Positions 5,531-58,497 of a stretch of 64,000 nt of DNA are shown here, piece after piece. Position numbers and translations under genes: made by a program. The stretch spans positions 24,676,001 through 24,740,000 of the forward strand of contig NW_027361770.1 of the NCBI RefSeq assembly GCF_039654945.1, written 5' to 3'. Source of the DNA: Dendrobates tinctorius. Lineage: Eukaryota. A model generated the notes under the pieces. It was not told the DNA's origin and searched no databases. It saw only the letters and a list, made by a program, of their open reading frames with translations. Numbering within the stretch: position 1 is the stretch's first letter; each line of letters begins with the position of its first letter.

Positions 5531-6468
5531 CTACATTTCTTTGATAAACAAATTCAGCAGACAGAAGGGTATCATTATTCATATAGAAAATGACATATCA
5601 GACATATAAAATCATATATTGATACCCCAAATGATGGACAAATATATGGACTGATCGCAATATAACATGAAAACCACAACCACAAGAAAAGAAATGATCA
5701 TCAAGTCCAAAGTACTCCAAATATATCAATTTTTATTTAATTAACCCCTTCACGACCTTTGACGCCACGTAGGCGTCATGAAAAGTCGTGTCAGAACGAC
5801 CCATGACGCCTATGTGGCGTCATGACTTTAAAGCCCCCCTGCGGGTCGGGTGACCTAGGTCACTGAAAGGTCACCCGACCCGCAGATACAGGGGGCTTTG
5901 TTCTTCGCCACAGGGGGCGTGGCTTCGCCCCCACGTGGCTACGATCGCTCTGATTGGCTGTTATAAGTGAAACAGCCAATCAGAGCGATAGTAATATTTC
6001 ATCAATTAAAATTGATGAAATATTACAATCCAGCCATGGCCGATGCTGCTGTAGCATCGGACATGGCTGGAGACACCGATTCCACCCTCCCCACCGGCGA
6101 TCGCCCCCCCGCAACTGAATGACAGCGGCGATCTGCCGCCGCTGTCATCATCTGCCCCCCTCCCATTCCCTCTGCTCCCCGCCAGCCTCCGATCCCCCCC
6201 TCACCCCCTCTCACCTCCCCCGGCACCTTCTAAGTCCCCCTGTCGCTCCCGGTGTCCGGCGGGTCCGGTTCATGGGCGCCGCCATCTTAGAAAATGGCGG
6301 GCGCATGCGCAGTGCGCCCGCCCGAATCTGCCGGCTGCAGATTCCATTCTTTCATTTTGATCACTCTCACAGTGATCAAAATGAAAGAAAAAGTAAATAA
6401 ACCCCCCGATTATCACCCCCATAGGTAGGCAGAACTAATAAAATAAAGAAAATATTTTTATTTTTCCA

Positions 6469-6860
6469 TTAGGGTTAGGGTTAGGGTTGAAAAGAGGGTT
6501 AGGGTTAGGGTTGAAAAGAGGGTTAGGGTTAGGGTTGAAAAGAGGGTTAGGGTTAGGGTTGGAAAGAGGGATAGGGTTAGGGTTGGAAAGAGGGTTAGGG
6601 TTAGGGTTGGAAAGAGGGCTAGGGTTGGAAAGAGGGTTAGGGTTGGAAAGAGGGTTAGGGTTGGAAAGAGGGTTAGGGTTAGGATTGGAAAGAGGGTTAG
6701 GGTTGGACTTAGGGTTAGGGTTGGAATTAGGGTTAGAATTAGGGTTAGGGTTGGAATTAGGGTTAGCGTTGGAATTAGGGTTAGGCTTGTGGTTAGGGAT
6801 GTGTTAGGGTTAGGGCTGTGGTTAGGGGTGTGTTGGGGTTAGGGTTGGAGTTAGAATTGA
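6469..6860 (+). repeat. Telomere-like (TTAGGG)n tract with GGGTTGGAAAGA / GGGTTGGAATTA variants
   Basis: Directly visible, inside the TTAA element. Confidence 0.95.
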
Positions 6861-6861
6861 G

Positions 6862-9800
6862 GGGTTTCCACTGTTTAGGCACATCAGGGGGTCGCCAAAC
6901 GCGACATGGTGCAACCATTGATTCCAGCCAATTTTGCGTTCAAAAAGTCAAACGGTGCTCCCTCCCTTCCAAGCCCTGACGTGTGCCCAAACACTGGTTT
7001 ACCCCAACATTTGAGGTATCAGCGTACTCAGGAAAAATTGCACAACAACTTTTGGGGACTAATTTCTCGTGTTACCCTTGGGAAAATAAAAAATTGGGGC
7101 TAAAAAATTATTTTTGTGGAAAAAAATGATTTTTTCATTTTCACGTCTCTGCATTATAAACTTCTGTGAAGCACTTGGGGGGTTCAAAGTGCTCACAACA
7201 CATCTTACATACGTTCCTTGGAAGGTCTAGTTTCCAAAATGGGGTCACTTGTGGGGGGTTTCCACTGTTTAGGCACATCAGGGGCTCTGCAAACGTAATG
7301 ACGACCGCAGACTATTCCATCAAAGTCTGCATTTCAAAACGTCACTACTTCCATTCCGAGCCTTGACGTGTGCCCAAACAATGGTTCCTCCCCACATATG
7401 GGGTACCAGCGTACTCAGGACAAACTGGACAACAACTTTTGGGGTCCAATTTCTCCTGTTACCCTTGTGAAAATAAAAAATTGCGGGCTAAAAAATCATT
7501 TTTTGAGAAAAAAAAAGATTTTTTATTTTCACGGTTCTGCGTTATATACTTCTGTGAAGCACTTGGGGGTTCAAAGTGCTGCTCACCACACATCTAGATA
7601 AGTTCCTTGGTGGTCTAGTTTCCAAAATGGGGTCACTTGTGGGGGTTTCCACTGTTTAGGCACATCAGAGGCTCTGCAAACGTAACATGATGCCCGCAGA
7701 CCATTCGATCAAGTCGGTATTTCAAAACGTCACTACTTCCCTTCCGAGCCCCGACGTGTGCCCAAACAATGGTCCCTCCCCACATATGGGGTATCAGCAT
7801 ACTCAGGACAAACTGGACAACAACTTTTGGGGTCCAATTTCTCCTGTTACCCTTGTGAAAATAAAAAATTGCGAGCTAAAAATTCATTTTTTGAGGAAAA
7901 AAAAAGATTTTTTATTTTCATGGCTCTGCGTTACAATCTTCTGTGAAGCACTTCGGGGTTCAAGGTGCTCACCACACATCTAGATAAGTTCCTTGGGGGG
8001 TCTAGTTTCCAAAATGGGGTCACTTGTTGGGGGTTTCCACAGTTTAGGTACATCAAGGGCTCTGCAAATGTAACATGATGCCCGCAGACCATTCCATCAA
8101 AGTCTGCATACCAAAACGTCACTACTTCCCTTCCGAGCCCTGACGTGTGCCCATACAGTGGTCATCCCCCACATATGGGGTATCAGCGTACTCAGGACAA
8201 ACTGGACAACAACTTTTGGGGTCCAATTTCTCCTGTTACCCTTGTGAAAAAAAAATTGCGTGCTAAAATTCATTTTTTTTGAGGGAAAAAAAATGATTTT
8301 TTATTTTCACGGCTCTGCATTATAAACTTCTGTGAAGCACTTGGGGGTTCAAGGTGCTCACCACACATCTAGATAAGTTCCTTGGGGGGTCTAGTTTCCA
8401 AAATGGGGTCACTTGTGGGGGGTTTCTACTGTTTAGGCACACAGGGGCTCAGCAAATGTAACATGACGCCCGCAGACCATTCCATCAAAGTCAGCATTTC
8501 AAAATGTCACTACTTCCCTGCTGAGCCCCAGCGTGTGCCCAAACAGTGGTTCCCCCCCAGATATGGGGTACGAGCGTACTCAGGACAAACTGGACAACAA
8601 CTTTTGGGGTCCAATTTATCCTAGTACTCTTGTGAAAATAAAAAATTGCCAACTAAAAAATTTTTTTTTAGGAAAAAAAAAGATTTTTTATTTTCACTGC
8701 TCTGCATTATAAACTTCTGTGAATCACCTGGGGGTTCAAAGTGCTCACTATGCATCTAGATAAGTTCCTTAGGGGGTCTAGTTTCCAAAATGGGGTCATT
8801 TGTGGGGGAGCTCCAAAGTTAAGGCACACAGGGGCTCTCCAAACACGACATGGTGTCTGCTAACGATTGGAGCCAATTTTCATTTCAAAAAGTCAAATGG
8901 CGCTCATTCCCTTCTGCGCCCTGCCGTGCACCCAAACAGTGCCCCCCCCCACATATGGGGTACCAGCATACTCAGGACAAACTGGACAACAACTTTTGTG
9001 GTCCAATTTCTCCTGTTACCCTTGTGAAAATAAAAAATAGCGTGCTAAAAAATCATTTTTGAGGAAAAAAAATGATTTTTTATTTTCACTGCTCTATGTT
9101 ATAAACTTTTGTGAAGCACTTGGGGGTTCAAAGTGATCACTACACATCTAGATAAGTTCCTTAAGGGGTCGAGTTTCCAAAATGGTGTCACTTGTGGAGG
9201 AGCTCCAATGTTTAGGCACACAGGGGATCTCCAAACGCGACATGGTTTCCGATAACGATTGGAGCTAATTTTCCATTCAAAAAGTCAAATGGCGCTCCTT
9301 CCCTTCCGGGCCCTGCCGTGCACCCAAACAGTGGTTTATGACCACATATGAGGTATCGGTGTACTCAGGAGAAATTGCCCAACAAATTTTAGGATCCATT
9401 TTATCCTGTTGCCCATGTGAAAATGAAAAAACTGAGGCTAAAAGATAATTTTTGTGAAAAAAAGTACTTTTTTTTTTTACGGATCAATTTGAGAAGCACC
9501 TGGGGGTTCAAAGTGATCACTTTGCATCTAGATAAGTTCCTTGGGGGGTCTAGTTTCCAAAATGGGGTCACTTGTGGGGGAGCTCCAGTGTTTAGGCACA
9601 CAGCGACTCTCCAAACGCGACATGGCAAGCGCTAAATATTCCAGCATATTTTCCATTCAAAAAGTCAAATGGCACTCCTTCCTTTCTGAGCCCTGCCGTG
9701 CACCCAAACAGTGTTTTTTTACCACATATGAGGTATCGGTGTAGTCAGGGGAAATTGCCCAACAAATTTTAGGATCCATTTTATCCTGTTGCCCATGTGA

Positions 9801-9990
9801 AAATGAAAAAATTGATGCTGAAAGAAAATTTTTGTTGGAAAAATTAAAATGTCCTTTTTTTCCTTCCATGTTGCTTTAGTTCCTGTGAAACACCTAAAGG
9901 GTTAATAATCTTCTTGAATGTAGTTTTGAGTAGCTTGAGGGGTGCAGTTTTTAGAATGGTGTCACTTTTGGGTATTTTCTGCCATATAGA
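6862..9990 (+). repeat. Tandem array of about eight ~388 bp units
   Basis: Anchor TTTCCAAAATGG at 7231, 7619, 8006, 8395, 8782, 9174 and 9554, with a degenerate copy near 9948. Confidence 0.92.
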
Positions 9991-10824
9991 CCCCTCAAAG
10001 TGACTTCAAATGTGAGGTGGTCCCTAAAAAAAATGGTTTTGTAAATTTTGTTGTAAAAATGAGAAATCACTGGTCAACTTTTAACCCTTATAACTTACTA
10101 ATAAAAAAATATTTTGCTTCCAAAATTGTGCTGATGTAAAGTAGACATGTGGGAAATGTTATTTAGTAACTATTTTGTGTCACATAACTCTCTAGTTTAA
10201 CAGAATAAAAATTCAAAATTTGAAAATTGCGAAATTTTCAAAATTTTCGCCAAATTTCTGATTTTTTCACAAATAAACGCAAAAATTATCGATCTAAATT
10301 TACCACTAACATGAAGCCCAATATATCACGAAAAAACAATCTCAGAATCGCTAGGATGCGTTGAAGCGTTCCAGAGTTATTACCTCATAAAGGGACACTG
10401 GTCAGAATTGCAAAAAATGGCCAGGTCATTAAGGTCAAAATAGGCTGGGTCATGAAGGGGTTAATTACAAATATAGCAGCAAGTCTAGGGTGGTACAAAC
10501 CAAAGTGCTATGTGCAGTTAAAGGAAAAACCAAACAAACGGGACACAGGTGTGCTGTCTGAATAGTACAGAAAATATATCTAGTATTGTTATATATAGGA
10601 GGTAACAAGACCCCACTAGGATTAGTATAATATGTATCCAGATTCCCTCAAGAATATTAACATAAAGATCCTATTTATAAAACCCTGGCAGCAATCATTA
10701 TAACATGATTCCATATAGTATAAACCAGAATGGAGCCATATAGCTCCCAGTACATACCAAATAACGATCACCAGGCTGCTAGGGAAGTAGTAACAAGAAG
10801 GAATGGAGACAACCACACACCAGC

Positions 10825-11661: not shown

Positions 11662-13274
<1,613 letters not shown>

Positions 13275-16560: not shown

Positions 16561-17324
16561 TCTGGCAGGGGTGTGAAGACATTTTATATCCACTGTACAA
16601 AACAAAAAGCATTTGAAAAAGCAAAAGTTTTGTTTGTATAAGCAGTGTCACACATGGTGTATATAAATATGTGCAACCAATCTGCAAGAAATGCTGTAAA
16701 AAGTGTTAATTGTTAATATTTTTCAGCATGTATCATGAGTTATTACAATCAGTCATTATGTGCCTTGTATTTCATATTGCCATATATTGCTTTATTTCAT
16801 GGATTATTTCTTGTTTTAAGCATTTTTGTAATTGAATTGATTAGTCTTCATTTTCCAACTTTTACTTTACCGCTAAGGATAAGATTACAACTTATAATGA
16901 AGCAAACATATCATTATTATTGTTGCCATAAAGAGCTCCAGCAGCTGTGGTTTAATTACACTCTGCACATTGCTCCGTAAATGCTCTATTTATACACATT
17001 AGCTAGAATGATTTTAGACATAAACTAGACTACAAAGACTGATGTACACAATGATATACATAATTGTTTCCTCCAGTTTTCTCACTTGTTTTACTTTCTT
17101 TGTCTACCTGTGGAAATCTGCATGTTGTCTTTCCAGAATATTTGTTTGTATTTTTAAATATATCTAGGGTACCTTGTCATGCTATGCCTAGCACAGTGGA
17201 GAAGCTGCAAGAAATTCATGGTGGTAATTTGATTGTATGCAAAGAAATGTGAAATAATATTAATTGCATGTTTGGGCTATGTGCCTATCACTGACTACTG
17301 TATGGATACTAAAAAGTAACTATA

Positions 17325-18200
17325 CAGTCGGTACGGAAAGTATTCAGACCCCTTTAAATTTTTCACTTTTTGTTTCATTGCAGCCGTTTGGTAAATTCAA
17401 AAAAGTTCATTTTTCTTTCTCATTAATGTACACTCTGCACCCCATCTTGACTGAAAAAAAACAGAAAGGTAGAAATTTTTGCAAATTTATTAAAAAAGAA
17501 AAACTAGTTAAACAGCTATATGTAAGCCTTACATCACCAAGCACAATTGCAAATGTAGATTGAAGTTGCATAAAGAATACAACTCTGCAGCAGTGGAAGC
17601 GTGAGTGGCAAAAGATGTTTCTGTATCCGACAGTCTGACTGACAAGTCTACATTTGGTATATACCAGGACACCGAAATGAGCCTGACTGCATTGTGTCAC
17701 TTGTAAAGTTTGGTGGGGAAAAGCTAATGCTATTGATTTTTTCAGGGGTTGGCTTAGGTCCCTAGTGATGGAAAATCTAATGCCTCAGTGTATCAAGTAA
17801 TTTTGGATAATTGTATGCTTACAGCTTTGAAGAAACAGTTTGAGGATGTCCCGTGTTTGTTCCAGAATTACTGAGCACACAGCAAGGTCTATAAAGGCAT
17901 TGCTGGGTCTGTTTGGTTTGGAAGATGACTGACCACCACAGAGCACTGACCTAAACAACTTTGGGGTGAGCAAAAAAATAAATTGTGAGCCAGGCCAACA
18001 TCATCGTCTCTCTTCATAAATGTTCTTCAGAATGAATTGCCAAAAATTATTTCAAAGACACTCTAAAATCTTGTGGGAAAACCTCACAGGAGTGGAAACT
18101 GTTATAGCTGCAAAGAGAGCCAACTCCATATTATTGGCTATGTAGTTAGAATGGGATGTCATAAAAGATTTTCTAGGTAGAACAATATAATTTTCATTTA
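17325..18200 (+). mobile_element. Tc1-like relic(s): TIR plus heavily decayed transposase
   Basis: TA|CAGTCGGTACGGAAAGTATTCAGACCCC terminus. Decayed VKFGG and WPPQSTDLN-like coding remnants at 17700-17960. Confidence 0.6.
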
Positions 18201-19678
18201 TATAGCACCAATATAATGTCCAAACAGTGTATGATTCTACAGCAACGACTTATATGTAATTTATCGCATTAATACAACATTCTTACTTAAACTTTACTTT
18301 TTCAGCACTCAATAATTGTTTAAAAAATATGTATTAATGAAAAATTATTTTTTACAATAAATACATTTTCTCAAGCACTTGTTTTTCTCAACCAGATCAG
18401 GTGATTCATGAAGCCCAAACTTTGCTTAGCATATATCCCAGCCTGATGGCATGATTGTAGCCAGGCAAATAATTTTTTTAAATACTACAACGTTTTAGAG
18501 AAGGTTTACTTTGAGGATCCGGACTAGTCGCATCTCTGACTATTGTTCCTGGCCAATTTTTCTGAGTGCTCTCCTGGTGATTGACAAGACTCCCCTATGT
18601 ACACATGAAGGAGAGACATGTTAATCTCCTGCTGCGGCGCTGGTAAGAACCATTTGGACTAGTCTGGCGAGATTGTTAAGTTATATTTTTCCATAGTTTG
18701 GACAGTATGAATCACCTAACAGGTTTCCTTTCACTCTTCCTTCCTAAAATGCCTCATTTATTCTACAACACAAGCATTTTTGAAATCCCCCCTCATGCAA
18801 CTGCTTTTTGTTTGTAAGTTGTTGTGAAAATCCTCCAGTATTTCTTTATGTCTAGCTTTACCTTTTTCCTGTTCACATAGTAGCAAGCATCCGGATCCGT
18901 GAATTAGCTTGTCAAAATTGCAAATATGTTTTGGGTTAGGTGAAAGAATAGGGTAGCTAATAAGTGCCTGACAACTTTGGGTGAACACCACTGGGACTCC
19001 CACAAATTATGATTATGAGGGGTACTGGATCCAGAATCTGGACCGAGCAGCAGTCATGTATTCATGGATGTAACATCTCTAGTGACGCTTGTATCACAGA
19101 AAATAAATCACTAAAAACTGCTGAGAATGAAGAGAAATCACCTTGATACCAGATCTTAGTATTATGACTTCACTGAAGGTTGAATATTATACTAGTTTAG
19201 TAAAAAAAAAAATCATCAACTACAAAGGCTACATAAGTGCAAAAGATATATTTCCTAAATGATTTAAAAATAACTGAAAAAATCTAGTGTCTATGTGGGG
19301 TTGTTTCTATGGCATGTTCATGATTGCTGCAAGCCTCTAAGAAATATGGGACATGAAAATTCACATCGCTTATGTCTACTTGTTGGGCTCCACTATTAAC
19401 TCTGGACATCTGCTCTGGATACAAATGAAAAAAGGAGCTCTTGGCTTTATTCCAATGTCTAAAGTTTATGCTAACCTGAGCGACCTGTCAACCATTGAGA
19501 GATTTCTTGGTCTACACAGTTTGGCTCCTACATGTTAAGACAATACTGTCAGTTCATACATATCCAATAAAATTATATATTATTGCAAGATTAAGCATAC
19601 AAATGTGCATACTATATTATATTAAATTGTAAACTTAATAAAGTAGAATGAATACTTTAGAATTGAAAGCATTTCTAA

Positions 19679-19976
19679 TAGTGATGAGCGAGTACACTCG
19701 TTGCTCGGGTTTTTGGTGATCTCCGAGTATTTTGGCGTGCTCAGAGATTTAGTTTTTGTCAACGCAGCTGCATGATTTGCGGCTGCTGGACAGCCTGAAT
19801 ACATGTGAGGAATGCCTGTTTGTTAGGGAATTCCCTCATGTATTCAAGCTGTTCAGCAACCGCAAATCATGCAGCTGAGGCGACGAAAACTAAATCTCCG
19901 AACACGCCAAAATACTCGGAGACCACCCAAGCATGATCAGGAAAACCCGAGCAATGAGTATACTCGCTCATCACTA
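19679..19976. mobile_element. hAT-type MITE, nearly palindromic
   Basis: 8 bp TSD ATTTCTAA on both sides; TIR TAGTGATGAGCGAGTA. Confidence 0.92.
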
Positions 19977-22032
19977 ATTTCTAATTAATTGTATTATTAG
20001 TAGTAAGGCCAATTTATCCAAACTTTTACGTCAGAAAACTGATATAATAAACTTTGAAAAGTTGCAAGATTTTTATACAAAACAAGGGTTTGCCAAAAAA
20101 ATTTGTGACTTTTGACATTTTCACACCATTTTCTCCCAACGTCAACAAAATGGGCAGAGCAGATACATGGTCCTAGACTAGACGGTGGAGTGATGGTGAC
20201 GGTGACGGTTTTGATGTATCAGGGGCACAGTGTTGGCTTAATCAGTCAGTCTTTATGTCACTATACATTCGCTTTTGCTTCTACAGTTTTAAAATAATGA
20301 GATTTATTTTCAAAGGAAAGCACAGTAAATTGTTTTTAAGATACAAGCATTCATTCTGCTCTTCAGCAGTGACAGTTTTGCATCATTCTAGCGATAAGTC
20401 ACATACAAGCAAATAAAGTCAAGTGTTTCTTTTATGTAATAGTTGATTAAAATAAACATAATGTTGAAGCACTAAACACTAATTGAACATTTTATGTTGT
20501 AATGTTAATGTGCATTGCCCCAGAGAAGATTTTACAATTATGAGTAATGATGTATCTCCACATGCATTCTGACATTTAATTTGGCTGAATTGTATTTTTG
20601 TTGCTGTGAAAATACTACCCTTAAAGAAGGCTGGAAAGCTTTAATAATATTTAACAAAAAACCTGTGACTGCTGGAGCTAGGCTGCAAATCACCCTAATG
20701 TCCTGTTGGCAAACGTGATATTTTATTTGTAGAAAATATAATAAACTGTTTGCTGTATTGATTGAAGAAATATAGTGATTATTATTTCTTCTTGACATCC
20801 TAGTATTTGTTCAATAGGTCAGGGAGCAATGCCATCCGTTTCCTAATAGGACATTCAGTGTAAGATTTGCAAGTCCTACAGGTACCTTTAAGCATAGATA
20901 AATATGCACTCGTGGTTTCACTTGGATAGTTTTTCACCACCAAAGGATGATTATGTTGTGTGCCTTGAGACATTGGCCATAATATATTTCCTGTCCCGTT
21001 ATTGCATTTTAGAATCATAAACAATGACTGTTTGGCTCAAAGCCATTTATTCAGCCCAAAAAGACATTATTTGCACAACAAAAATCAATAAAAATGTTAC
21101 TAGGTCTGGCTGGATATTTTGCTTAACTGTGATATTTGTCTGTCACTGATGGCATGCCATCTCTCGTAGGAGGCTAGGGCCAAAACACAGCTATTGATCC
21201 AGTCATCAGTGATGGATACTGGCATTTGGAAAGAGCTGCTGCAGAGAATCTCGATTAAAAAATATTTCTATGTTTCCCCTGCAGCACAGTCAAGATAACC
21301 TGAATGAGGACATTGTCTTTGTTTTATTAGGCTTCTCCCTCTTCCAGTTGTTAAATGCTTTGGACCAAAGTTCATTATTGAGAAAATTAAGTCAATCTAT
21401 GTTTAGCCAAAGGCTGTGACATCACATCAAATCCAACTGATTTAACCAAGACCTACTTGTCCTTTTCATCGCCTTAAAAGTGCAAAGGAAACATTTCATA
21501 TCTGCTCGTGTGCCATGATCAGGGGTGATATGTAGAGGTGCTTTCTCTGATATTTGAGCAGAGCTTATGCATTTCTCTCATAGTTTGTAAAATGACATAG
21601 ATTTTACAAGGCTGCTGGGGAAACCAGTAAAATGTATGAGCGGTAAACCTTATTGTTCTGCGTAATATGACATCGATCCATTATAATTATGTCTGTGCAT
21701 ATCGGTGTGTGTGCTTCAAATGTTCCTCTTTGTGTAGAAATATTCAGAAATTCTCATTCTTTTTCTAAACAGTACAAACATTCTCCTAAAAGCAAGTTAA
21801 CCTTTATACTTCCATACAGTGTTTTCATGTACCCACAAATAATAATAGGCACAAAGAAATATTATATTTCAAAACAATTACTAGTTGGATTATGTAAGTA
21901 GCATATTCTTTTGATAATAGTTTAAACTATATATTTTTTTTTATTTTACCAGTGTCTGAAGTAAAAACATCACGAGAAAAATCTGTCTTAATTGTATTTA
22001 AAATATTTCTGACATTTGGGGAGATTTATTAA

Positions 22033-22430
22033 GTGGGCTGTCTGGTAATTTTACATTGATGAGCTATCCCAAAGGTCATTTATAGCAGAGACGCCAGGTC
22101 TCCGCCGATCAGCTGTTCACGGTGGTAGTCAGAAGTGCTCTGTTGCGGAGATGCACAGCACAGCTTTGTCAACTGTATAGTGGCTAGAGTTGGGCACTGT
22201 ACATATGCTCTATATTGATTAGAATAAGGGGCAGATATTCAGTACCTTGTCATGTTTACTATGCTGTTGACAGAGCTGTACTGTGCAGCTTTGAAACTGA
22301 GTACTTTTGATTGCCACCTGCATCAGAATCAGCTGATCGGATGGGTGCTGGGTGTCACACCCCCATCAATGAGATATTAATCACCTATCCTAAGGATAGG
22401 CTTTCAATGTAAAAGTCCCAGACAACCCCT
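22033..22430. mobile_element. T2/Kolobok-like MITE (degenerate)
   Basis: TTAA on the left and ACAACCCCT on the right; subterminal inverted TTTTACATTGA..CTATCC / GGATAG..TCAATGTAAAA. Confidence 0.55.
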
Positions 22431-22914
22431 TCAATATTGGTGCTTCAAGCTCATGAACAGAACATATACTAATTTGAAAAATCTGGAATATTTGTGAAAT
22501 GGTAGAGGGAAAAGTTACATCTGATCTCTTAGCTGAGTGACTGTAGCTAAAGGTTCCTAGCCAATAAATTTGGTCCTGTTCTTGTAGTTAGAAAGGAGTG
22601 TCCATTTAAAAATATATCAAAATAGGCATTGTTAACCTTTAAGCCCATGCCACTGCATTGCTTCCTCCAGGAGACGACACTCACATTATGTATTTCTCTG
22701 CCCCCTTCAACATGCCGCATCATACTCCACAAGTACATTTAAATGCACAGTCTCATTAGGCTATATACAGACATAGACTTAAAATATGCATATGCTTATA
22801 CATTACATATGCATTTACACTTTACACTTGCATATACTTTTTTCCAAATATGCACACATATATAAAATACACACATACACATAACACATTTATATAAACA
22901 ATGATACACACATA

Positions 22915-24519
22915 CAGTGGGGAAAAAAAGTATTTAGTCAGTCAGCAATAGTGCAAGTTCCACCACTTAAAAAGATGAGAGGAGTCTGTAATTTACATCA
23001 TAGGTAGACCTCAACTATGGGAGACAAACTGAGAAAAAAAAATCCAGAAAATCACATTGTCTGTTTTTTTTTTTCATTTTATTTGCATATTATGGTGGAA
23101 AATAAGTATTTGGTCAGAAACAAAATTTCATCTCAATACTTTGTGATATATCCTTTGTTGGCAATGACAGAGGTCAAACGTTTTCTGTAAGTCTTCACAA
23201 GGTTGCCACACACTGTTGTTGGTATGTTGGCCCATTCCTCCATGCAGATCTCCTCTAGAGCAGTGATGTTTTTGGCTTTTCGCTTGGCAACACGGACTTT
23301 CAACTCCCTCCAAAGGTTTTCTATAGGGTTGAGATCTGGAGACTGGCTAGGCCACTCCAGGACCTTGAAATGCTTCTTACGAAGCCACTCCTTCGTTGCC
23401 CTGGCGGTGTGCTTTGGATCATTGTCATGTTGAAAGACCCAGCCACGTTTCATCTTCAATGCCCTTGCTGATGGAAGGAGGTTTGCACTCAAAATCTCAC
23501 GATACATGGCCCCATTCATTCTTTCATGTACCCGGATCAGTCGTCCTGGCCCCTTTGCAGAGAAACAGCCCCAAAGCATGATGTTTCCACCACCATGCTT
23601 TACAGTAGGTATGGTGTTTGATGGATGCAACTCAGTATTCTTTTTCCTCCAAACACGACAAGTTGTGTTTCTACCAAACAGTTCCAGTTTGGTTTCATCA
23701 GACCATAGGACATTCTCCCAAAACTCCTCTGGATCATCCAAATGCTCTCTAGCAAACTTCAGACGGGCCCGGACATGTACAGGCTTAAGCAGTGGGACAC
23801 GTCTGGCACTGCAGGATCTGAGTCCATGGTGGCGTAGTGTGTTACTTATGGTAGGCCTTGTTACATTGGTCCCAGCTCTCTGCATTCATTCACTAGGTTC
23901 CCCCGCGTGGTTCTGGGATTTTTGCTCACCGTTCTTGTGATCATTCTGACCCCACGGGGTGGGATTTTGCGTGGAGCACCAGATCGAGGGAGATTATCAG
24001 TGGTCTTGTATGTCTTCCATTTTCTAATTATTGCTCCCACAGTTGATTTCTTCACTCCAAGCTGGTTGGCTATTGCAAATTCAGTCTTCCCAGCCTGGTG
24101 CAGGGCTACAATTTTGTTTCTGGTGTCCTTTGACAGCTCTTTGGTCTTCACCATAGTGGAGTTTGGAGTCAGACTGTTTGAGGGTGTGCACAGGTGTCTT
24201 TTTATACTGATAACAAGTTTAAACAGGTGCCATTATTACAGGTAATGAGTGGAGGAAAAAGGAGACTCTTAAAGAAGTTACAGGTCTGTGAGAGCCAGAA
24301 ATCTTGATTGCTTGTTTCTGACCAAATACTTATTTTCCACCATAATATGCAAATAAAATGAAAAAAAAAACAGACAATGTGATTTTCTGGATTTTTTTTT
24401 CTCAGTTTGTCTCCCATAGTTGAGGTCTACCTATGATGTAAATTACAGACGCCTCTCATCTTTTTAAGTGGTGGAACTTGCACTATTGCTGACTGACTAA
24501 ATACTTTTTTTCCCCACTG
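22915..24519 (-). mobile_element. Tc1-like transposon (family B), young full-length copy
   Basis: TA TSD; ~200 bp nearly identical TIRs starting CAGTGGGGAAAAAAAGTATTTAG. Confidence 0.96.
23133..24154 (-). pseudogene. Tc1 DD34E transposase with a single frameshift near 23885
   Basis: ORF 23861..24154 (HTH region) and ORF 23133..23885 ([26 protein letters not shown]). Confidence 0.93.
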
Positions 24520-25022
24520 TATACACAAATAGATTTTTCTGATGCATATGTTCAGACAACCAGAAAATGTTTTTGCTTCCCCTTTCTACATTCACAGTTT
24601 TAGCAGCATTACTGTTTATTATTATTTAAGCCAGACTATATAAGGTCAATTTTGTTAAATGATTTAGGATGTTTATTTTTGAAAACTTTATTAGCAATGT
24701 GATTATTATGTTTGTTTTTTATGTTTTCAAAAATTTTACAGGGAAAAGGTATCCGACTTCTATTTTCCCTATTATACAGGTGTATAGAGATATACTAATA
24801 AATAAATTCAGGTATATAGAGATATACAAATTTATAGTAATGCATCTCTATATATCAGTACAATATGTCTGTATAGAAGAATACTATTTAGTTCTTTAGG
24901 CAGACTAAAATTATATTTTATTAATAATAATAATAATCTTTATTTTTACATAGCGCTAACATATTCCTCAGCATTTTCAGCATTCTATGGCTTACTGCTA
25001 AACTTTCTTCCCTCCATTCTAA

Positions 25023-26370
25023 GGCTGTGTGCACACGGTGCGGTTTCTGCTGCGCTTCCGCAGCGGTTTTGCCCCTGCGGAAACGCAGCAGTTCCGCTCA
25101 CCAAGTACAGTACAATGAAACCCTATGGGGTTTCAAAAACGCTGTGCTGACGGTGCGGTTTTTCCCGCGCGGTTTTGCTGCGGTTTACAAACCGCATCAT
25201 GTCAATTGTTTGTGCGGTTTCCGCAGCGGTTTCATACCTCTACCATAGTAGAGGTGTGAAACCGCAGGGCAAAACCACAGACCAAACTGCAGGAAAACCG
25301 CAGGTCACTTTACCTGCGGTTTTACCTGCGTTTCCGCGCGGAAAAAAACGCAGCGGAATCCGCAACGTGTGCACATTAGGGTGACCGGATCGCATATGGG
25401 AGGCAAAAGATGTCAGAATCTTGTTCATCTGGACCCCACAAAACGATTCCCCTTTCCAGATATTGAGATAGCCAAAATTTGAGCTCGATCAAACGACGTT
25501 AACCCGTGCCGCTCGTCGCTCAAAGTTTGAAAAAATCCAAATTGAGGTATTTTAAGACTTAGGTATTTTGCATAGTCTGTTAGACTATAAAGAATGTGAC
25601 AACAACATTGCAGAAATAGCCCTGACCAAATTTTCGAACCATTTGTGGTATTTGAATGCAGAGTTGGTGGGATTATCGTTTTTTGATCCTACCATTACAG
25701 ACAATGAAAAGTTGTTAATGGCTAATAAATTGCTCAGTAGCACAGATGAACCATCAGAGCACGCTAACCTACATGAGTTGATAATTTTACATAGTTATCT
25801 AATCTATTCTAGAGCTTTTGTTAAAGTAGTTTTTGAAACGTCAGAATATAATGCTCGGCATTTGCTTACAACTTGCAGGACATATTGCTTTTGTTCTTCA
25901 TCTTTTGTCAGAAGGTCGTTAAAGTCGGTTACTTCCTACCTCTTTTAATTTTTCTTTCCTAACTTTTGGATTTACAACCCTAGCATGCTCTGATGGTTCA
26001 TCTGTGCTACTGAGCAATTTATTAGCCATTAACAACTTTTCATTGTCTGTAATGGTGGGATCAAAAAACGATAATCCCACCAACTCTGCATTTAAATACC
26101 ACAAATGGTTCGAAAATTTGGTCAGGGCTATTTCTGCAATGTTGTTGTCACATTCTTTATAGTCTAACAGACTATGCAAAATACCTAAGTCTTAAAATAC
26201 CTCAATTTGGATTTTTTCAAACTTTGAGCGACGAGCGGCACGGGTTAACGTCGTTTGATCGAGCTCAAATTTTGGCTATCTCAATATCTGGAAAGGGGAA
26301 TCGTTTTGTGGGGTCCAGACGGACAAAATTCCGACATCGATTTTTTGCGGTCACCCTAGTGCACATAGCC
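25023..26370. mobile_element. Harbinger-type MITE interrupted by a hAT foldback
   Basis: TAA|GGCTGTGTGCAC ... GTGCACATAGCC|TAA; internal (T)GCGG / CCGCA motifs. Confidence 0.8.
25377..26358. mobile_element. hAT-superfamily foldback derivative with 358 bp inverted arms containing transposase CDS
   Basis: 8 bp TSD GTGCACAT; TIR TAGGGTGACCG; arms 25409-25766 and 25981-26338. Coding remnants KFSNHLWYL (arms) and LTKDEEQKQYVLQVV (spacer, minus strand). Confidence 0.9.
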
Positions 26371-26494
26371 TAAAGCTTCTGAGTTTGTTTCCTAGATCAG
26401 ACTAAACTTCAAGTAAATCAAATTGTAATTTCCAATTTACATCACTTAATCATTGGCCTTGGAGGTCTTGAGTTTTCTATATTAGGAAGACATA

Positions 26495-27172
26495 TGTCAA
26501 GAAGTGACTGGCCCTGTGTGACACACATGACCCAACAATCAGTCGCTCAGTAAACGACAAACAAACAAGGGAACACCGGGGACACAACTACAACGGTGGG
26601 CCCTGCGATATAGAACGGGGAAATGGACACCTCATGCACTCTCCTGAGGCTGTGCCCTGGTCTATACTGACGTCCCTATACGGCTTCTTTCAAATCGTCG
26701 CCGAGCAGGATATCTTAGCCCTCACTTGCCCTGCACCTATCCCTCAGTAGGGAACTGGCAAGTGAGAACACTGGTCCCACCGCTGCACTAATACAGCACC
26801 AAGAGAAGATAAAATAGACAAGGTAAGACAAACAACACTTAGCTTTCTCTGCTGCAATGTACCGCACAGCAGAGTAAAGCACCAGATCACAGCATTCAGC
26901 TGAAGCACCACGGCACCAGAAAGCTCCTGTCTTCAGCACGGTTGGTTTCCAAAAGGACCTGTAGAACCAAAAGTCAGCTGATGCATCATGTGACCTTTTA
27001 AAGGAAGGTGGAGGTGGTCACCTCACCACCTGCATCAGCAAACTAACCAGCCATGGAATTATACTAGCGGCCACTGGGGGGGAAAACAGACATTAACCCT
27101 TGATGGCCAGAAAGGAAAAAGTTTATATGTGAGAATGCAGATCTGCCACAAATCCAAAAATGGATCATGACA
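26495..27172. mobile_element. Solo LTR
   Basis: TGTCA...TGACA termini, 5 bp TSD ACATA, homologous to 37965-38845. Confidence 0.85.
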
Positions 27173-29299
27173 ACATAACTGCTTAGGCCAGCTTGTATTC
27201 TTCAGTGAAAGTAGAGCAATTTTTCAAACATTTGATTAACACTGTGCCTAAACTTGCACTGTTGCTTTATATCCATTTAGTCCAGCAAAATTTTATTTAT
27301 TTCAACATTTGGTTCTAGATAACAATATATTATTGTATCCAAAATGTTGCATCATGTTCTCATATACTTAATGAGATTTTATATTAGAAGCATTAGACAG
27401 GTAGTTATTATTCATACACTGTTGTAGAACACAACTTTCCTTATGCCTGACAGAAAATAATTGAATGCTGAATATAACCTAAATAGCCTTAGTAAAATGT
27501 ATTTAACAATTCACATATTGACTGCAAGACCACTTTTAACAGAAGTTACACATTGCTGATGCTTTTGGAATCCAAATAGAAATGTAGCACATGGTAATGA
27601 TTTTGCAAATACTTTTCTAGTCCAAAATCAATTATATTGATTGTCATTAAAGCAGCAAGCTAAAAACAATGAAGTGGTTTCTAATTTTCAGGCTCCTGGT
27701 GGACTCGGCTCTATCTCTTCCTCTTCCTAGTTAAGGGTATCATTAAATGGTAAAAGCAAACAGCCTAGTGAGAGGCCAAGTGTTTTATTAATTCATCATC
27801 AGAATTATCCTAGTGCATTAATATTAATAGCTTTAAATTGGATTCCATTTAGGAAGTGAAATAAATATGCCGTTAGTAAAAGCCTATATAGCTGATGAAT
27901 CCTTGGAAACGGCGCTTATGCAGGCAATGCAAAAATAGATTTGATAAGTCCTCTTAACTTTTGTTAGACTAGGGGCACCTTCCGGATAAAGTTTCATGTA
28001 CAGAAAAGATTGCTTAACCTTTTGCTATTTAACAAGAATACAATCCTTGTTTATACAGTTTGATCTGTCTATTATCAGTCTACCCATCCATTTGTATACT
28101 GGCAGGATGCTAGGAGTATAAAAAATACTATCAATTAAAAACACAACAAAAAGCAACTAAATTATGTAGTCTTTAAGAAATATTGATACTAGCAATGAGA
28201 AAATCTGCTGAAATTCAATTTTTTTCATCTTCACTCAAATTTGGCTAAGAAATTTGTTTCACCTTTAATCCATGAAATCCAAATCAAAGTTGCCTTTTTA
28301 AGACATATAATATGTTCTGAGGTTTCTCCAGACCCTAGAAAATAATAACCAAAAAGTAAAAAAAACTTAAACATAATACTCACTTTTTCCTCTGCCCTCT
28401 CCTATCCAACCTTGCAGTCCCCTCTGGTTCTGGTGACTTGGGTTCTTTGGGGCCTCTAGGCCTCTTGAAGTCATAACCTTTTGAGATTTAATCAGTGCTG
28501 GAGCCTCTAAAGATCCTGGAGTGATCAGTGCTGGAGTGATCTGGGCAGCGGGATACATAAGAGGTGATTATATTTATTTAGTTTAGTATTTCTTCTGACT
28601 ATATAATGAGTCCAGGAAAATAGCAGTAGGCCTCTAGTTTGTTGGATTGAAGCAAATTTTAAGTCTGGTAACTAATTTTTTTTTAGTAAAAAATTCAAAG
28701 GAGATGGCAGAAATGAGAGGAAGACACTGCTGGCCTGAGCCTTTCCTCACACGATGCATTAGGTGCTGGGGCCATATGTAATCAAAAATTTTCTGTGGAT
28801 TAATGGACATTATAAGGAACTTTTTTCAGACACAAGCTACTTTTAGGAACAATACATACTAATACAACCTTACACGTATTGCTGGTATCCTCCTATATAT
28901 ACATAAACAGCTTTGCATCCTGCACTTTGCCAGCCATTTCCAATATACCTATTTCTTATATAGTTTTTAGTTAACAATATATGAATATATGCAGTCAATC
29001 ATCATTTTATATTATTATTGTATTGTTTTATTATCTTTGTAAGTATATTCTATTTTAGTATTCCCCTTTTTTGCTATTTTGTCTTTTGTACTGGTTGCTT
29101 TTGTAAAAGTTGTTACAGGCCTATCCATAGTGCAGAAGCTATTTCTAAAAAAAAAGCTAATTTATTTGCTTTGAATCAATCCTCTCATCTCTAACTAACA
29201 CATATCAGTTGCATTTATGTTCAACCTATTATATTACAATGTATTGTAAGGCGTAAATGATATTCTTTTTCAATACTAGTTTTTCTCTTCTCTATCTTA

Positions 29300-30799: not shown

Positions 30800-33541
30800 A
30801 CCTCCCCCTTGAGGAGGGGTCACCGAACCCTCAACCACGCCACCAGGGCGATCAGGGTGAGCCCGATGAAATGCACGCACCAATCTTTTGGCATGAATAT
30901 CAGAGGCAGAGACCCAGGAATTATCCTCCTGACATAACCCTTCCACTTAACTAAATACTGGAGTCTCCGTCTAGCCAGACGGGAAACCAGTATTTTCTCT
31001 ACCTCATATTCCATGTTACCTTCAACCAATACTGGGTCTGGAGGTGCCACCCCAGGAACAACTGGTTCAACAAACCTCTTCAACAAGGACTTATGGAACA
31101 CATTATGGATTTTAAATGTGACAGGAAGAGCCAAATGAAAAGAGACCGGATTAATAATCTCCAAAATCTTGTAAGGTCCAATAAATCTAAGCTTAAACTT
31201 AGGACAAACCACCTTCATAGCAATATTTTTTGATGATAACCACACCATATCACCAATCTTAAACTGGGGACCAATGGTCCTATGTCGATTGGAAAACCGC
31301 TGGGCCTTTTCCTGCGAGAGAGATAACTTATCCACCACTTGATCCCAGATCTGGTGCATTCTCTCCACCACAGTGTCAACACCTGGGCAGGCAGAATGCT
31401 CCACCTGCCCTGAAGAAAATCGAGGATGAAACCCAAAGTTACAAAAAAAAGGTGACATCAAAGTGGCAGAACTAGCTCTATTATTTAAAGTAAATTCGGC
31501 CAAGGGCAAAAATGAAACCCAATCATCCTGATCAGCAGAAATAAAACATCTCAAATACGACTCCAAGGTCTGGTTTGTTCTCTCTGTCTGCCCATTAGTC
31601 TGAGGGTGAAAAGCAGAGGAGAAGGACAACTGAATTCCCAGCTTGGAACAGAAAGTCCTCCAAAATCTAGACACAAACTGAACTCCTCTGTCAGATACAA
31701 TGTTCTCAGGAATCCCGTGTAAGCGAACCACCTGTTGCAAAAACAGGGGCACCAACTCAGAGGAAGATGGCAACTTAGGGAGTGGTACAAGATGAACCAT
31801 CTTAGAGAACCTATCACAAATCACCCAAATAACAGTCATTCTTTGAGAGACCGGCATATCAGAGATGAAATCCATTGAAATATGGGTCCATGGCCTCCTG
31901 GGGACCGGCAAAGGCATCAACAACCCACTAGAGCGAGAACAAGATTTAGACCGGGAGCAAGTCCCACAGGACTGCACAAAATTCCTGACATCATGAGACA
32001 AGGTGGGCCACCAAAAAGAGCGACTCACCAGATCTCTAGTACCAAAAATACCTGGATGACCAGCCAATGCAGAGCAATGAACTTCAGACATCACTCTCTT
32101 CTTCCACTGGTCAGGAACATACAACTTTCCACTGGGACAATGCTCAGGTTTGTCCTCCTGGAACACTTGCAGAGCAAGTCTCAAATCGGGTGAGATGGCA
32201 GAAAGAGCTACCCCTTCGCCTAAGATGGTAGCAGGCTTGGTCACCACAGGAGAATCAGCAAAGAAACTCCTAGAGAGGGCATCTGCCTTGACATTCTTAG
32301 TTCCAGGAAGAAAAGAGACCACAAAATCTAAACGTGTAAAAAACAAGGCCCACCTAGCCTGTCTATGGTTTAAGCGTTTAGCTGACTCTAGGTAAATCAA
32401 ATTCTTGTGGTCAGTGAGGACCACAACTTGATGTTTAGCTCCCTCCAACCAATGTCTCCACTCCTCAAATGCCCATTTCATGGCCAACAGTTCCCGATTC
32501 CCCACATCATAGTTACGTTCAGATGGAGAGAACTTTCGGGAAAAGAAAGCACAGGGATTCATTTTAGATGTTACAGGATCCTTTTGGGACAAAACAGCTC
32601 CTGCACTAATCTCAGAAGCATCCACCTCTACCTGGAACGGGAGTGAGACATCAGGTTGCTGCAAAACCGGGGCAGAGGTAAATCTTCGCTTCAGCTCCTG
32701 AAAGGAAGCAACAGCCTCAGGAGACCAATCCAACACATCAGCACCCTTCTTAGTCAGATCAGTCAATGGCTTGGCAATACTAGAAAATTTTGCTATAAAT
32801 TTCCGATAAAAATTAGCAAAACCCAAAAACTTCTGGAGGGCCTTCAAAGAAGTGGGCTGAACCCAATCATAAATGGCCTGTACCTTGGCCGGGTCCATTT
32901 CAATAGTTGACGGAGACAAAATAAATCCCAAAAATGAAATCCTCTGTACTCCAAAAAGGCATTTCGATCCTTTGACATACAGGGAATTCTCCCTCAAGAT
33001 CCGGAACACAGTCCGAATATGTTCCACATGAGAATCCCAATCCTTGGAGAAGATCAAAATATCATCCAGATAGATAATCAAAAATTTATCGACAAAGTCC
33101 CGGAAAATATCGTTCATGAAGCACTGGAAGACAGAAGGGGCATTAGTGAGCCCAAAAGGCATCACCAGGTACTCAAAATGTCCCTCCGGAGTATTAAACG
33201 CGTCTTCCATTCATCCCCCTGCTTAATGCGGATAAGATTATACGCCCCCCTGAGGTCAAGCTTGGTAAACCAGCAAGCACCTCTAACTCTAGAAAATAGA
33301 TCCGAAATCAGGGGTAACGGATACTGATATTTAATAGTAATTTTATTGAGGGCACGATAATCAATACAAGGCCTTAAAGAACCATCCTTTTTGGCCACAA
33401 AAAAAACCCCAGCACCTAAGGGTGAAGAGGATGGTCTAATATGACCCTTCTCCAACGCCTCCTTAATATAGGACCGCATAGCCTCGTGCTCGGGTACAGA
33501 TAAATTGAAGAGCCGACCCTTGGGAAATTTACACCCTGGGC
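30800..33541 (-). pseudogene. pol: Pol: RT, RNase H, integrase, chromodomain (frameshifted)
   Basis: [60 protein letters not shown]. Frame breaks near 33550, 33200 and 30930. Confidence 0.93.
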
Positions 33542-34831
33542 TTAGTTCAATTGCACATAACTCCTATGAGGAGGCAAGGACGCAGACTCATTCTCACTAA
33601 ATACATCATAAAAGTCCGCCAAATAGTCAGGAACATCATGCGACTGAGGAGAGGTGGAAAAAACCGGAGCCTCACTAAAGGCACACCGACAACCCCAACT
33701 CACCACAGACACAGATTTACAATCCAAAACTGGATTATGAATTTGCAACCAGGGAAACCCCAGAACAACGGCATCATGCAGACCATGCAATACCAAAAAT
33801 CTGCAATTTTCTTGATGGTCTGGGGCGACCCGCATGACCACCTGGGTCCAAAACTGAGGTTTATTTTTAGCCAAAAGAGTAGCATCAATCCCCCTCAAAG
33901 GGATAGGCGTCTGCAGAGGTGTCATCGGAAATCCACAAAGTTTAGCAAAATCCAAGTCCATTAGGTTTAGCGCTGCTCCTGAATCCACAAAAGCCTTGGC
34001 GGAAAATGTGGACAGGGAGCAGATCAGAGTAATTGCCAGAAGAAACTTAGGTTGAACACCACCAACAGAAAACGTGTGTGCAAAGCGTTTCTCTCGTTTA
34101 GGACAAACAGAAATAATATGCGAGGCATCTCCACAGAAAAAACACAGCTTATTACACATTCTGAACTCCTGACGTTGCGCCTTAGACAAAACTCTATCAC
34201 ATTGCATAGGTTCGGACGTCTGTTCAACCGGTGGCAACACCTCTCGTGCAATCCTGCGTTCACGTAAACGCCGATCAACCTGAATGGCTAATGACATAAA
34301 ATCGTCCAGACCAGAGGGAACAGGAAATCCCACCATAGTATCTTTTACGGCTTCTGACAAACCCTTCCGAAAGAGAGCAGCCAAGGCATTATCATTCCAG
34401 GTAGTAAGGACCGCCCACTTTCGGAACTTTTGACAGTACAACTCTGCAGAATCTCGACCCTGGTTCAATGCCAACAGGGTCTTTTCAGCCTGATCAATAG
34501 CATTAGGTTCGTCATACAACAACCCCAAAGCTTGAAAGAATGCGTTCACATTAGTCAGAATAGGATCATCTGGTTTCAAAGAAAAAGCCCAATCCTGGGG
34601 ATCGCCACGCAGCAAAGAGATGACAATTTTAACCTGCTGCGCGGAGCTCCCTGACGAGTTAGGCTTCAAGGCAAAAAATAATTTACAATTATTTTTGAAA
34701 CTCAAAAATTTAGATTGATCCCCAAAAAATACATCAGGAGTAGGGATCTTTGGTTCAACAGCATGCAAACGAGCAAGGTAGGCGGAAATTCCCCACACTT
34801 CCGCAGCGAGCTGCTCCACATGATCAGACAA
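33542..34831 (-). CDS. gag: Gag (retrotransposon capsid, CCHC zinc knuckle) plus aspartic protease
   Basis: [14 protein letters not shown] knuckle; AFVDSGA protease motif; frameshift at the end into pol. Confidence 0.88.
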
Positions 34832-40101: not shown

Positions 40102-42832
40102 ATGGGCAACAAACAAGGAGAATTGGAACTACTAACACAGGAACAGAAATATGATGTAATTGGAATCACTGAAACTTGGTGGGACAATACACATGATTGG
40201 AATACAAGACTAGAAGGATACAACTTATTTGCAAGAAACAGACTTGATAAACGAGGAGGGGGTGTCGCATTGTATGTTCGAAACGCGTATATCTGCACAG
40301 AGATTGAAGCTTCAGAGACTGGGAGTTCTGTGGAAACTGTTTGGGTAAGAATACAAGGACAGAACAATGGAAAGGACACCATTGTAGGCATTTACTACAG
40401 GCCGCCTGTGCAAGCCGAAGATATAGATGAACTCTTTATGCATCAGATGGCCAAGTTCTCCAAAAAATATGACATAGTTGTCATGGGAGATTTCAACTAT
40501 CCAGACATTTGTTGGGAATCTCTCTCAGGCAAAACTAACAGGTCAAGGAAATTCTTATCCTCTCTTGCTGACAACTTTATCTTCCAAAAGGTAAGGGAGA
40601 AAACAAGGGGAACTGCTACCTTGGATCTAATCCTTATAAACAAGGAGGAAATGGTTGAGGAGGTAAAAGTGGCTGGGACCCTAGGAGGTAGCGACCATGC
40701 TATTTTAGAATTTTGGATTACTAGAGGTGGAAGACCTGTGAAGACTCAGACGTCAAGGTTAGATTTCAGAAAGGCAGATTTTAAGGGATTCAGAAAGAGA
40801 ATTGGAGGGATCCAATGGCTGGATATCCTTAAAGACAAAAATGTCCAGGAAGGATGGGAAATCTTGAAAAATGAAATTCTCAAAGCACAGTTGTTAACAA
40901 TTCCGAAAAGAGGGAAGAATAGGAAGCATTTAAGGAAACCAGGATGGATGAACACAGAACTTAAGCACATGCTAAAAAGGAAGAAAAAAATGTTTATAAA
41001 ATGGAAAGAGGGAGGCATATCTAAAGAAGAATATAATGCTGTCTGCAGAACCTGCAGGGCACAAATCAGATTAGCTAAAGCTGAAAATGAACTGAGGCTT
41101 GCAAGAGATGTCAAAAGCAATAATAAAGGATTTTGGGGATATGTCAAAAGTAAAAGAAAAGTCAAAGATGCTATAGGATTTTTACAGGATGAAAATGATG
41201 AAATGGTAAGACAGGATGTTGAGAAGGCTGAACTTTTAAATTCCTATTTTGCATCTGTTTTCTCTCAGAAAGGAAATGCAACATCAACTGTTATTCACTG
41301 TCCTATTAAGGGAATAGAAGAATCCAGGATATCTATAAACAGAAAGATAGTGAGGAAACACTTAGCTAACCTAAATGAATTCAAGTCTCCAGGTCCAGAT
41401 GAATTACACCCCAGAGTACTGAAGGAGATAGCAGAAGAAATTTTTGAACCCCTCTCCATAATCTTTGAAAATTCTTGGAGAACAGGAGAAGTGCCAGAAG
41501 ACTGGAGAAGAGCAAATGTTGTTCCTATCTTCAAAAAGGGGAAGAAGGTGGACCCAGGCAACTATAGGCCGGTGAGTCTGACTTCTATACCAGGAAAGAT
41601 CTTTGAACAAATTATTAAACAACATGTATGTCAATACCTGGATAAGAATGAAGTGATTAAACAGAGTCAGCATGGGTTTCTAACTAATAAGTCATGTCAG
41701 ACTAACTTAATTTCCTTCTATGACGGTATCACTGATTGGGTGGATCAAGGAAATGCTGTAGATATAGTATATCTTGACTTCAGCAAAGCATTTGACAAAG
41801 TCTCTCATACAATCCTTATTGAAAAAATGACTAAGTATGGAATGGACAAGGCAACTGTTAGGTGGATTCATAACTGGCTTAGTGATCGGACCCAAAGAGT
41901 GGTCGTAAATGGCTGCACATCCAGTTGGAAGAATGTCTCAAGTGGGGTACCACAGGGCTCTGTCCTGGGCCCTGTATTGTTCAACATCTTTATCAACGAT
42001 TTAGATGAAGGAATTGAGGGTAAACTGATTAAATTTGCTGATGACACAAAGCTAGGAGGGATAGCTAATACTAGAGAAGAGAGAGAGGATTCAAAAAGAT
42101 TTAAATAAACTGGAGAAGTGGGCAGCAACTAACAGAATGGTTTTTAACAGGGAGAAATGCAAAGTACTACATCTGGGCAATAAAAATGAAAAAAGCATAT
42201 ATAGAATGGGAGGAATAGGGCTAAGTGACAGCACATGTGAAAAAGACTTGGGTATACTAATAGATCACAGACTGAATATGAGTCAATAGTGTGATGCAGC
42301 AGCAAAAAAGGCAAATGCAATTCTAGGATGTATTAACAGAAGCATACAGTCTAGATCACGTGAAGTCATTATTTCCCTCTACTCCTCTTTGGTCAGACCT
42401 CATCTGGAATATTGTGTCCAGTTTTGGGCACCACATTTTAAAAAAGACATCAACAAACTGGAGCAAGTTCAGAAAAGAGCGACCAGAATGGTGACCGGTC
42501 TGCAAACCCTGTCTTATGAGGAAAGGTTGCAGGATTTGGGAATGTTTAGTTTGCAAAAGAGAAGACTGAGAGGAGACCTAATAGCTGTCTACAAATATCT
42601 AAAGGGCTGTCACATTGTAGAAGGATCAACTTTATTCTCATTTGCACAAGGAAAGACTAGAAGCAATGGGATGAAACTGAATGGGAAGAGACACAGATTA
42701 GATATTAGAAAAAACTTTTTGACAGTTAGAGTGATCAATGAGTGGAACAGGCTGCCACGAGAAGTGGTGAGTTCTCCTTCAATGGAAGTCTTCAAACAGA
42801 GGCTGGACAGACATCTGACTGGGATGATTTAG
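40102..42832 (+). pseudogene. CR1 ORF2 (endonuclease + reverse transcriptase)
   Basis: [32 protein letters not shown] and FADD motifs; frameshift near 42090 and a stop near 42287. Confidence 0.93.
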
Positions 42833-58473: not shown

Positions 58474-58497
58474 GGACGGGGGGAGGGTATTCTTTTT

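Follow-up and report, generated by a model that had tools for sequence, protein, structure and literature searches.

A candidate foldback, MITE-like hAT family with transposase coding sequence in its arms in the poison frog Dendrobates tinctorius

A short element with long inverted arms, part of which is transposase coding sequence, lies at 25377-26358 of the window, the 64-kb stretch of Dendrobates tinctorius DNA that was analysed as a whole. The locus raises the question of what such an element is, how it was formed from its parent transposon, and whether its hairpin acts against that parent. An earlier note on this DNA had described it as a foldback hAT derivative that may have moved as a unit and might be a self-spreading repressor of the kind of Mu killer in maize. 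In our reading, to which we assign a probability of about 0.8, the locus holds a copy of a foldback (MITE-like) element, young, non-autonomous and present in high copy number, that derives from a divergent hAT of dendrobatid frogs, with an origin in gap repair and template switching as set out below. A new foldback, MITE-like hAT family is the best reading of the sequences compared here.

The element is 982 bp long and is bounded by an 11-bp terminal inverted repeat (TIR), TAGGGTGACCG, whose only two occurrences in the 64 kb are the termini themselves, in inverted orientation to each other (chance expectation in 64 kb at up to one mismatch, 0.34 matches). It is flanked by a perfect 8-bp target duplication of GTGCACAT, the left copy at 25369-25376 and the right copy at 26359-26366. 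Its two arms of 358 nt each (25409-25766 and 25981-26338) are 98% complementary, with seven mismatches, and enclose a loop of 214 nt. The length, the duplication, the TIRs and the near-perfect arms had all been read correctly in the earlier note. No further copy of the element was found within the 64-kb window. When folded as RNA, the element formed one near-perfect stem of 358 bp (-702 kcal/mol, z = -60), the strength of which is a trivial consequence of the inverted repeat, and an Rfam scan of the window from 20 to 32 kb gave no match.

The insertion point is the right terminal palindrome (...CGTGTGCACAT) of a host MITE. The left part of this MITE occupies 25017-25376 and its left end reads ...GGCTGTGTGCACACGG; after the insertion, the MITE continues from 26359 to about 26376. 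The left part contains inverted repeats, shows a high word depth at 25152-25359 in two public sequencing runs (X1 and X7), and has a paralogue in X1 that is uninterrupted. As GTGCACAT is single both in the MITE's own terminal palindrome and in the uninterrupted X1 paralogue, the duplication was made by this insertion event. GTGCACAT fits nTnnnnAn, which we take to be the hAT target pattern. The right copy of the duplication is covered by a contig of X1, a DNA run, that extends over 26344-26523 on the unique right flank at a depth of 10 with 0 mismatches. The host MITE is about 380 bp long and rich in GCGGTTT/AAACCGC, and its summed word depth in X1 is about 1e5, compared with 10 for single-copy sequence. 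The surroundings are dense in transposons (30820-34831, 40102-42108, 57457-61396, 23133-23885, and 12511-13014), these five stretches holding a Ty3-type retrotransposon, two LINEs, and Tc1-type transposase remnants. The Ty3-type retrotransposon carries gag, RT, RNase H, integrase, and a chromodomain, and one of the two LINEs adjoins a frame that encodes a GDSL-esterase domain. The 64-kb window contained no recognisable host gene.

The transposase remnant of the element lies on the minus strand. When 1.84 billion proteins were searched with a profile built from the arm peptide and its homologue in L001, a contig of the Logan collection, 1722 matched at E<=1e-3, some of them full-length at 720-760 aa, which upheld the claim that the arms contain transposase coding sequence (213 nt per arm). 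Relatives were collected with this profile and with the 588-aa frame of L006, a contig from the JGI metagenomes, as query. Pfam and NCBIfam gave no match for the arm and loop peptides and related frames, Pfam gave none for 10 family members (eight of them 670-760 aa) and 16 aligned members, and a profile search of the PDB sequences with the transposase family was likewise negative. By these searches, the family is large, mostly arthropod, and too divergent for sequence profiles.

The assignment to a superfamily was made with a predicted structure. The AlphaFold model of P0101, which is a full-length relative with 41% identity to the frog parent and not the frog protein itself, had a pLDDT of 87.7. 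The top 12 matches of this model in a Foldseek comparison with the PDB were all Hermes (E of 2e-6 to 6e-4, probability of 1.00, and approximately 525-566 aligned columns); the P element transposase matched at an E of 0.016 only. Hermes is the reference hAT transposase, the fold of which is an RNase H-like core interrupted by a large helical insertion. Further hallmarks of hAT elements are short TIRs starting with YARNG and the target pattern nTnnnnAn. The termini of the element read TAGGG..., and two targets, GTGCACAT and ATATATAT, both fit the pattern. The Hermes-type fold of the model, the 8-bp duplication, the TAGGG termini, and the nTnnnnAn targets together indicate that the family is a divergent hAT, in agreement with the earlier classification of the element as a hAT derivative.

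Three parent-type sequences were available for reading the element. L001 is 94% identical to it, the first 30-50 bases or so of this contig (extent approximate) resembling an Illumina adapter and not biological sequence. L006 shares 95% identity with the element, and its frame stays open for 599 codons up to the same stop. The third, L009, comprises 65 kb of the Dendrobates tinctorius assembly GCA_039654945.1 (JAYMGB010000016.1), and its positions 5057-10373 (L009:5057-10373) hold a 5.3-kb element with the same 11-bp ends as the foldback. The flanks of this element, GTGCGCAT/GTGCACAT, form a target duplication at 7 of 8 positions, and its natural terminal inverted repeats extend over 257 nt at 96% identity (about 260 nt). 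Its two exons, which were compared with P0101 one by one, are open and align to residues 1-152 and 194-733 of that protein, and they carry the HWDGK, CFDTAASNTG, CRHHILE, and VVNDMAERGVKLI blocks. The 3'UTR is interrupted by an unrelated repeat of about 1.2 kb. The autonomous parent for which the earlier note had proposed a search is thus apparently present in the same genome as an intact copy, L009:5057-10373, that is 98-100% identical to the corresponding parts of the foldback.

The two tips of the foldback are of different types relative to the parent, one being 5'-type and the other 3'-type. The orientation of the coding sequence relative to the two tip types is the same in L006 as in the foldback and is opposite in L009 (compared at L006:2255-2422 and window 25377-25430 and 26310-26358). 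Such opposite orientations could be inversion isomers, produced when recombination between the long repeats at the two ends turns the interior around. As the orientation of the foldback is opposite to that of L009, the latter is not pinned as its direct precursor. The target of the L009 element (5049-5056 and 10374-10381) and that of the foldback (25369-25376 and 26359-26366) both lie in sequence resembling a MITE terminus, and two other copies were flanked by ATATATAT. These sites suggest a preference either for palindromic nTnnnnAn targets or for that particular MITE end.

Read against the parent from left to right, the element begins with a terminal region at 25377-25543 (plus strand), which consists of the TIR (25377-25387) and a parent 5'-type tip with 16 nt extra after the TIR. 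It matches L009 5057-5223 (95%), including the end-specific bases 25420 and 25425, and belongs to the long terminal inverted repeat that is natural to the family. At their natural 3' ends, L001, L006, and a contig of run X15 follow the element up to 25543 and then diverge. A junction filler of 10 nt in inverted copy (25544-25553, plus strand), the mirror of 26194-26203, is followed by an inverted duplicate of 213 nt of the transposase coding sequence (CDS), referred to as part A (25554-25766, plus strand). This duplicate stands in place of about 380 nt of parent 3'UTR, which is what the parent-type sequences L001, L006, L009, and the X15 contig have at this position. The duplicate ends at the foldback-specific junction J1 (25766/25767).

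The first part of the loop (25767-25931, minus strand) is the end of the transposase frame (CDS part B) plus 37 nt of the 3'UTR and is 99.4% identical to L009 8441-8605. The frame end, DFNDLLTKDEEQKQ...KALE, runs to a stop at 25804-25806, so that the C-terminus and stop codon lie in the loop as the earlier note had reported. A filler of 4 nt (25932-25935, minus strand; GAAG in sense) replaces a deletion of 189 nt, which took out the VVNDMAERGVKLI block, the site of the presumed catalytic glutamate. The parent form with the 189 nt present was found in X1 (depth of 366), X15, L001, L006, and L009. CDS part A itself covers 258 nt (25936-26193, minus strand), of which 25981-26193 belong to the right arm and 25936-25980 to the unpaired loop, and is 98.45% identical to L009 7994-8251. 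Between CDS part A and the terminal repeat lies the deletion-junction filler of 10 nt (26194-26203, minus strand); nine of its ten bases (AGGTATTTT) repeat a string 7 nt downstream. Contigs that carry the upstream transposase CDS diverge from the element at 26193 (X15) and at the mirror position 25553/25554 (X17). The right terminal region (26204-26358, minus strand), with the TIR at 26348-26358 and a parent 3'-type tip, is identical to L009 10219-10373 at 155 of 155 positions, i.e., 100% over the outer 155 nt. These three compared parts contain five differences in 578 nt, which makes the derivative young.

The anatomy changes how the inverted duplication has to be described. The arms are real, as had been claimed; about 155 nt of each arm are the parent's natural long terminal repeat, and the new part is about 223 nt (10-nt filler and 213 nt of coding sequence). 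The mismatches at 25420 and 25425 and the 16-nt block correspond to natural differences between the two ends of the parent, those at 25415 and 25427 represent CpG decay in this copy, and the three inner mismatches are synonymous and affect one arm only. The cluster of mismatches at 25415-25427 was considered as the point of a template switch and was rejected, as it is made up of two natural end differences and two cases of CpG decay. At three pairs of mirrored positions (25558/26189, 25604/26143, and 25703/26044), both arms differ from the parents, and two of these substitutions represent the family majority. The substitution at 25558/26189 is present in this copy, and the X1 contigs have the parental base; gene conversion from arm to arm, or a subfamily, may lie behind this.

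The frame of the element is truncated and has neither the catalytic blocks nor an ATG start, and the element encodes no protein. A truncated-protein repressor (KP-like) was accordingly considered and rejected: a stop precedes the frame, and there is no ATG before its final 36 codons.

How the parent became the foldback can be reconstructed as follows; we infer the order and the mechanism of the rearrangements solely from the junction sequences. The parent is an element of about 5 kb with two exons, a transposase of about 750 aa, and natural TIRs of about 260 nt. After an excision, misrepair of the gap may have linked position 155 of the terminal repeat with the final quarter of the CDS by way of the 10-nt templated filler, with 189 nt lost further on. 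Subsequently, a template switch between the homologous terminal repeats would have copied the junction and 213 nt of CDS across in place of the 3'UTR, with the paired 358-nt arms as the outcome. The filler at the junctions is templated, as is typical of faulty gap repair, and the presence of the 10-nt filler in both arms places the terminal deletion first and its copying across second. Since one 5'-type and one 3'-type tip were kept, the parent transposase could have mobilised the foldback in trans, and the family would then have spread to about 1000 copies, the present one landing in the terminal palindrome of a MITE. In any read-through transcript, the arms would pair to form a hairpin of approximately 350 bp, possibly a by-product, and its inner 213 bp match the parent mRNA.

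Gap repair combined with a template switch is, as we infer it from the junctions, the most economical origin. The same arms might have been made by one-ended snap-back synthesis, in which a broken single strand folds on a short inverted repeat and copies one end, with the corollary that both arms come from the same end of the parent. The arms are indeed identical from about 25428 inward, private changes aside, as this scheme would have it; however, the tips differ exactly in the way the 5' and 3' tips of the parent differ (the 16-nt block and the two end-specific bases), and the parent's own inverted repeats of about 260 nt are able to guide a template switch. We therefore give the snap-back scheme little credence.

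For the gap repair and template switch origin, a parallel is Galileo, a P-superfamily element of Drosophila with long foldback-like terminal repeats that have recruited a piece of the transposase frame (PMC4168063). The recruited piece in Galileo ranges from 69 bp to >500 bp and was attributed by the authors to faulty gap repair and template switching, and they called the trait 'so far unique' to Galileo (PMC4168063). The frog case differs from this insect P-superfamily element in being a vertebrate hAT and in being fixed in one short derivative that far outnumbers its parent; the recruitment of transposase CDS into long terminal repeats, reported as peculiar to Galileo, now has a counterpart in a vertebrate hAT. 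The element also resembles MITEs that shrank by microhomology, which are short and non-coding, keep both ends, have filler or microhomology at their junctions, and outnumber their parent (PMC3814204). Typical MITEs are <600 bp and have arms without coding sequence, whereas the frog element is 982 bp and 60% of its stem is coding. The stepwise conversion of a cut-and-paste transposon into a hairpin-shaped parasite of itself can be followed here, with every breakpoint readable against a parent of 98-100% identity in the same genome.

The abundance of the foldback was estimated from public sequencing runs. At least half of the words sampled from the 64-kb stretch were present in 14 runs, which came from several studies and included some very small ones. 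Word depths summed in X1 were 16,757-27,284 for the loop, 33,000-176,000 for the arms, and 366 for the parent-type joint that retains the 189 nt. Such sums do not amount to copy numbers and are informative for the order of magnitude only; read in this way, they suggest about 1000-3000 copies of the foldback and tens of parents, which is an estimate and not a count, and by the same word-depth estimate the foldback outnumbers the parent by about 70 to 1. The size of the Dendrobates tinctorius assembly is 6.35 Gb (PMC11152451). As another measure of parent number, the 40 members of the protein cluster P0168 were considered and dropped, as the members come from three frog genera.

In X7, a run from another study, a single contig of 274 nt (25737-26010, one mismatch) spans both arm/loop junctions and the site of the 189-nt deletion. 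As this contig is unbranched, the foldback form is dominant in X7. The match of X7 and X15 contigs ends at the right terminus of the element, and the flanks beyond it differ. The word depth, the shared junctions, and the different flanks support a multi-copy foldback that transposed as a unit, as the earlier note had proposed from the intact ends and the duplication of this one copy. An exact scan of the JGI metagenome contigs for J1 found none; this collection is unlikely to be rich in frog DNA, and the result carries little weight. With no coding capacity, both parental ends, many copies (by estimate), and a related autonomous element in the genome, the foldback has the features of a non-autonomous, MITE-like element.

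The same X7 contig bears on whether the inverted arm was falsely created during assembly, which the earlier note had raised against its own reading. Long inverted repeats are known to cause misassembly. The contig is made of short reads from a different study and nevertheless crosses both arm/loop junctions, and the target duplication is perfect inside the palindrome of the host MITE. The structure stands, and an assembly artefact can practically be dismissed.

Whether the foldback family is also a silencer is a separate matter. Under this proposal, the family would be a self-propagating source of hairpins, some copies of which are transcribed, either by read-through (in introns, for instance) or because the long terminal repeat contains a promoter; dicing or the piRNA pathway would turn the roughly 350-bp hairpin into small RNAs, which would repress the transposase mRNA and restrain the intact parent, making the family a self-spreading repressor. 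If true, a vertebrate would harbour a counterpart of Mu killer that moves and amplifies, and the scarcity of parents could be explained. The near-perfect 358-bp stem of the RNA fold favours the proposal, as do the 213 bp of the stem that are 98.45% identical to the CDS of the apparently intact parent, perfect runs of up to 45 nt against the more distant L006, and the estimated 1000 or so copies, which offer many chances of read-through. The presence of an apparently intact parent with 98-100% identity in the same genome means that a target for the hairpin RNA exists. The expectation in the earlier note of about 350 bp of double-stranded RNA directed against the parent transposase was correct in this respect and too broad in another, as only 213 of the 358 paired nucleotides are coding; the rest is terminal repeat that is already inverted (about 260 nt) in the parent.

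Several observations weigh against the proposal. The runs marked 'RNA?' were so marked by guess, and their ratios of MITE depth to foldback depth are similar to that of the DNA run. In X15 and X17, which are certainly RNA, the contigs are parent-type and J1 does not appear. This copy lies amid transposons (Ty3, LINE, and Tc1), with no host gene or promoter seen. The approximately 70-fold excess over the parent and the open parental frames argue against strong, immediate silencing in trans. In vertebrates, long double-stranded RNA is poorly processed into siRNAs outside oocytes, and piRNAs, which need no hairpin, are relied on. All considered, we regard a mobile hairpin silencer as unlikely and prefer the non-autonomous foldback derivative as the description of the family. 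The coexistence of the hairpin and its target nonetheless offers a direct test case for the silencing of DNA transposons by mobile inverted duplications in a vertebrate with a giant genome.

Precedents for such silencing come from other systems. Mu killer of maize is likewise an inverted duplication with a terminal repeat and part of a transposase gene and with the potential for a long hairpin RNA (PMC3440606). Mu killer is a single locus with a flanking promoter and a hairpin of about 4 kb, for which siRNA-based heritable silencing was demonstrated; the hairpin RNA of the frog element is predicted. The two also differ in that Mu killer belongs to the Mutator superfamily and to a plant with RNA-directed DNA methylation, and the frog element is a vertebrate hAT in an estimated 1000 or so copies, with both end types intact and a target duplication around it. 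Closer by superfamily are the composite Ac/Ds insertions of maize, hAT elements in which inverted repeats arise via aberrant transposition or repair (Wang et al., bioRxiv 10.1101/2020.01.07.897926), the inverted Ac fragments or duplications giving rise to double-stranded RNA against terminal and transcribed regions and to siRNAs. Unlike the frog element, these composites come from alternative transposition with re-replication, are not mobile units, and have had their silencing shown experimentally. For Tc1 in C. elegans, Sijen and Plasterk reportedly described in 2003 that read-through of the inverted repeats yields double-stranded RNA and RNAi against the family. The pairing in Tc1 is confined to the natural short terminal repeats, and the nematode amplifies the signal by means of an RNA-dependent RNA polymerase, which frogs are not known to have.

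The distribution of the transposase relatives was also recorded. Among the best 120 matches, the named relatives were dendrobatoid frogs and otherwise all arthropods, namely aphids, phylloxera, psyllids, ants, bees, Artemia, and a hoverfly (65%). One cluster of relatives at 71% identity included an isopod record flagged as contamination, and X17, an RNA run labelled 'pancrustacean metagenome', contained parent-type contigs 90-99% identical to the frog sequence. The transposon may have passed horizontally between poison frogs and arthropods, or the samples may have contained frog material. Relatives with at least 90% protein identity were annotated in Dendrobates tinctorius, Ranitomeya variabilis, and Anomaloglossus baeobatrachus.
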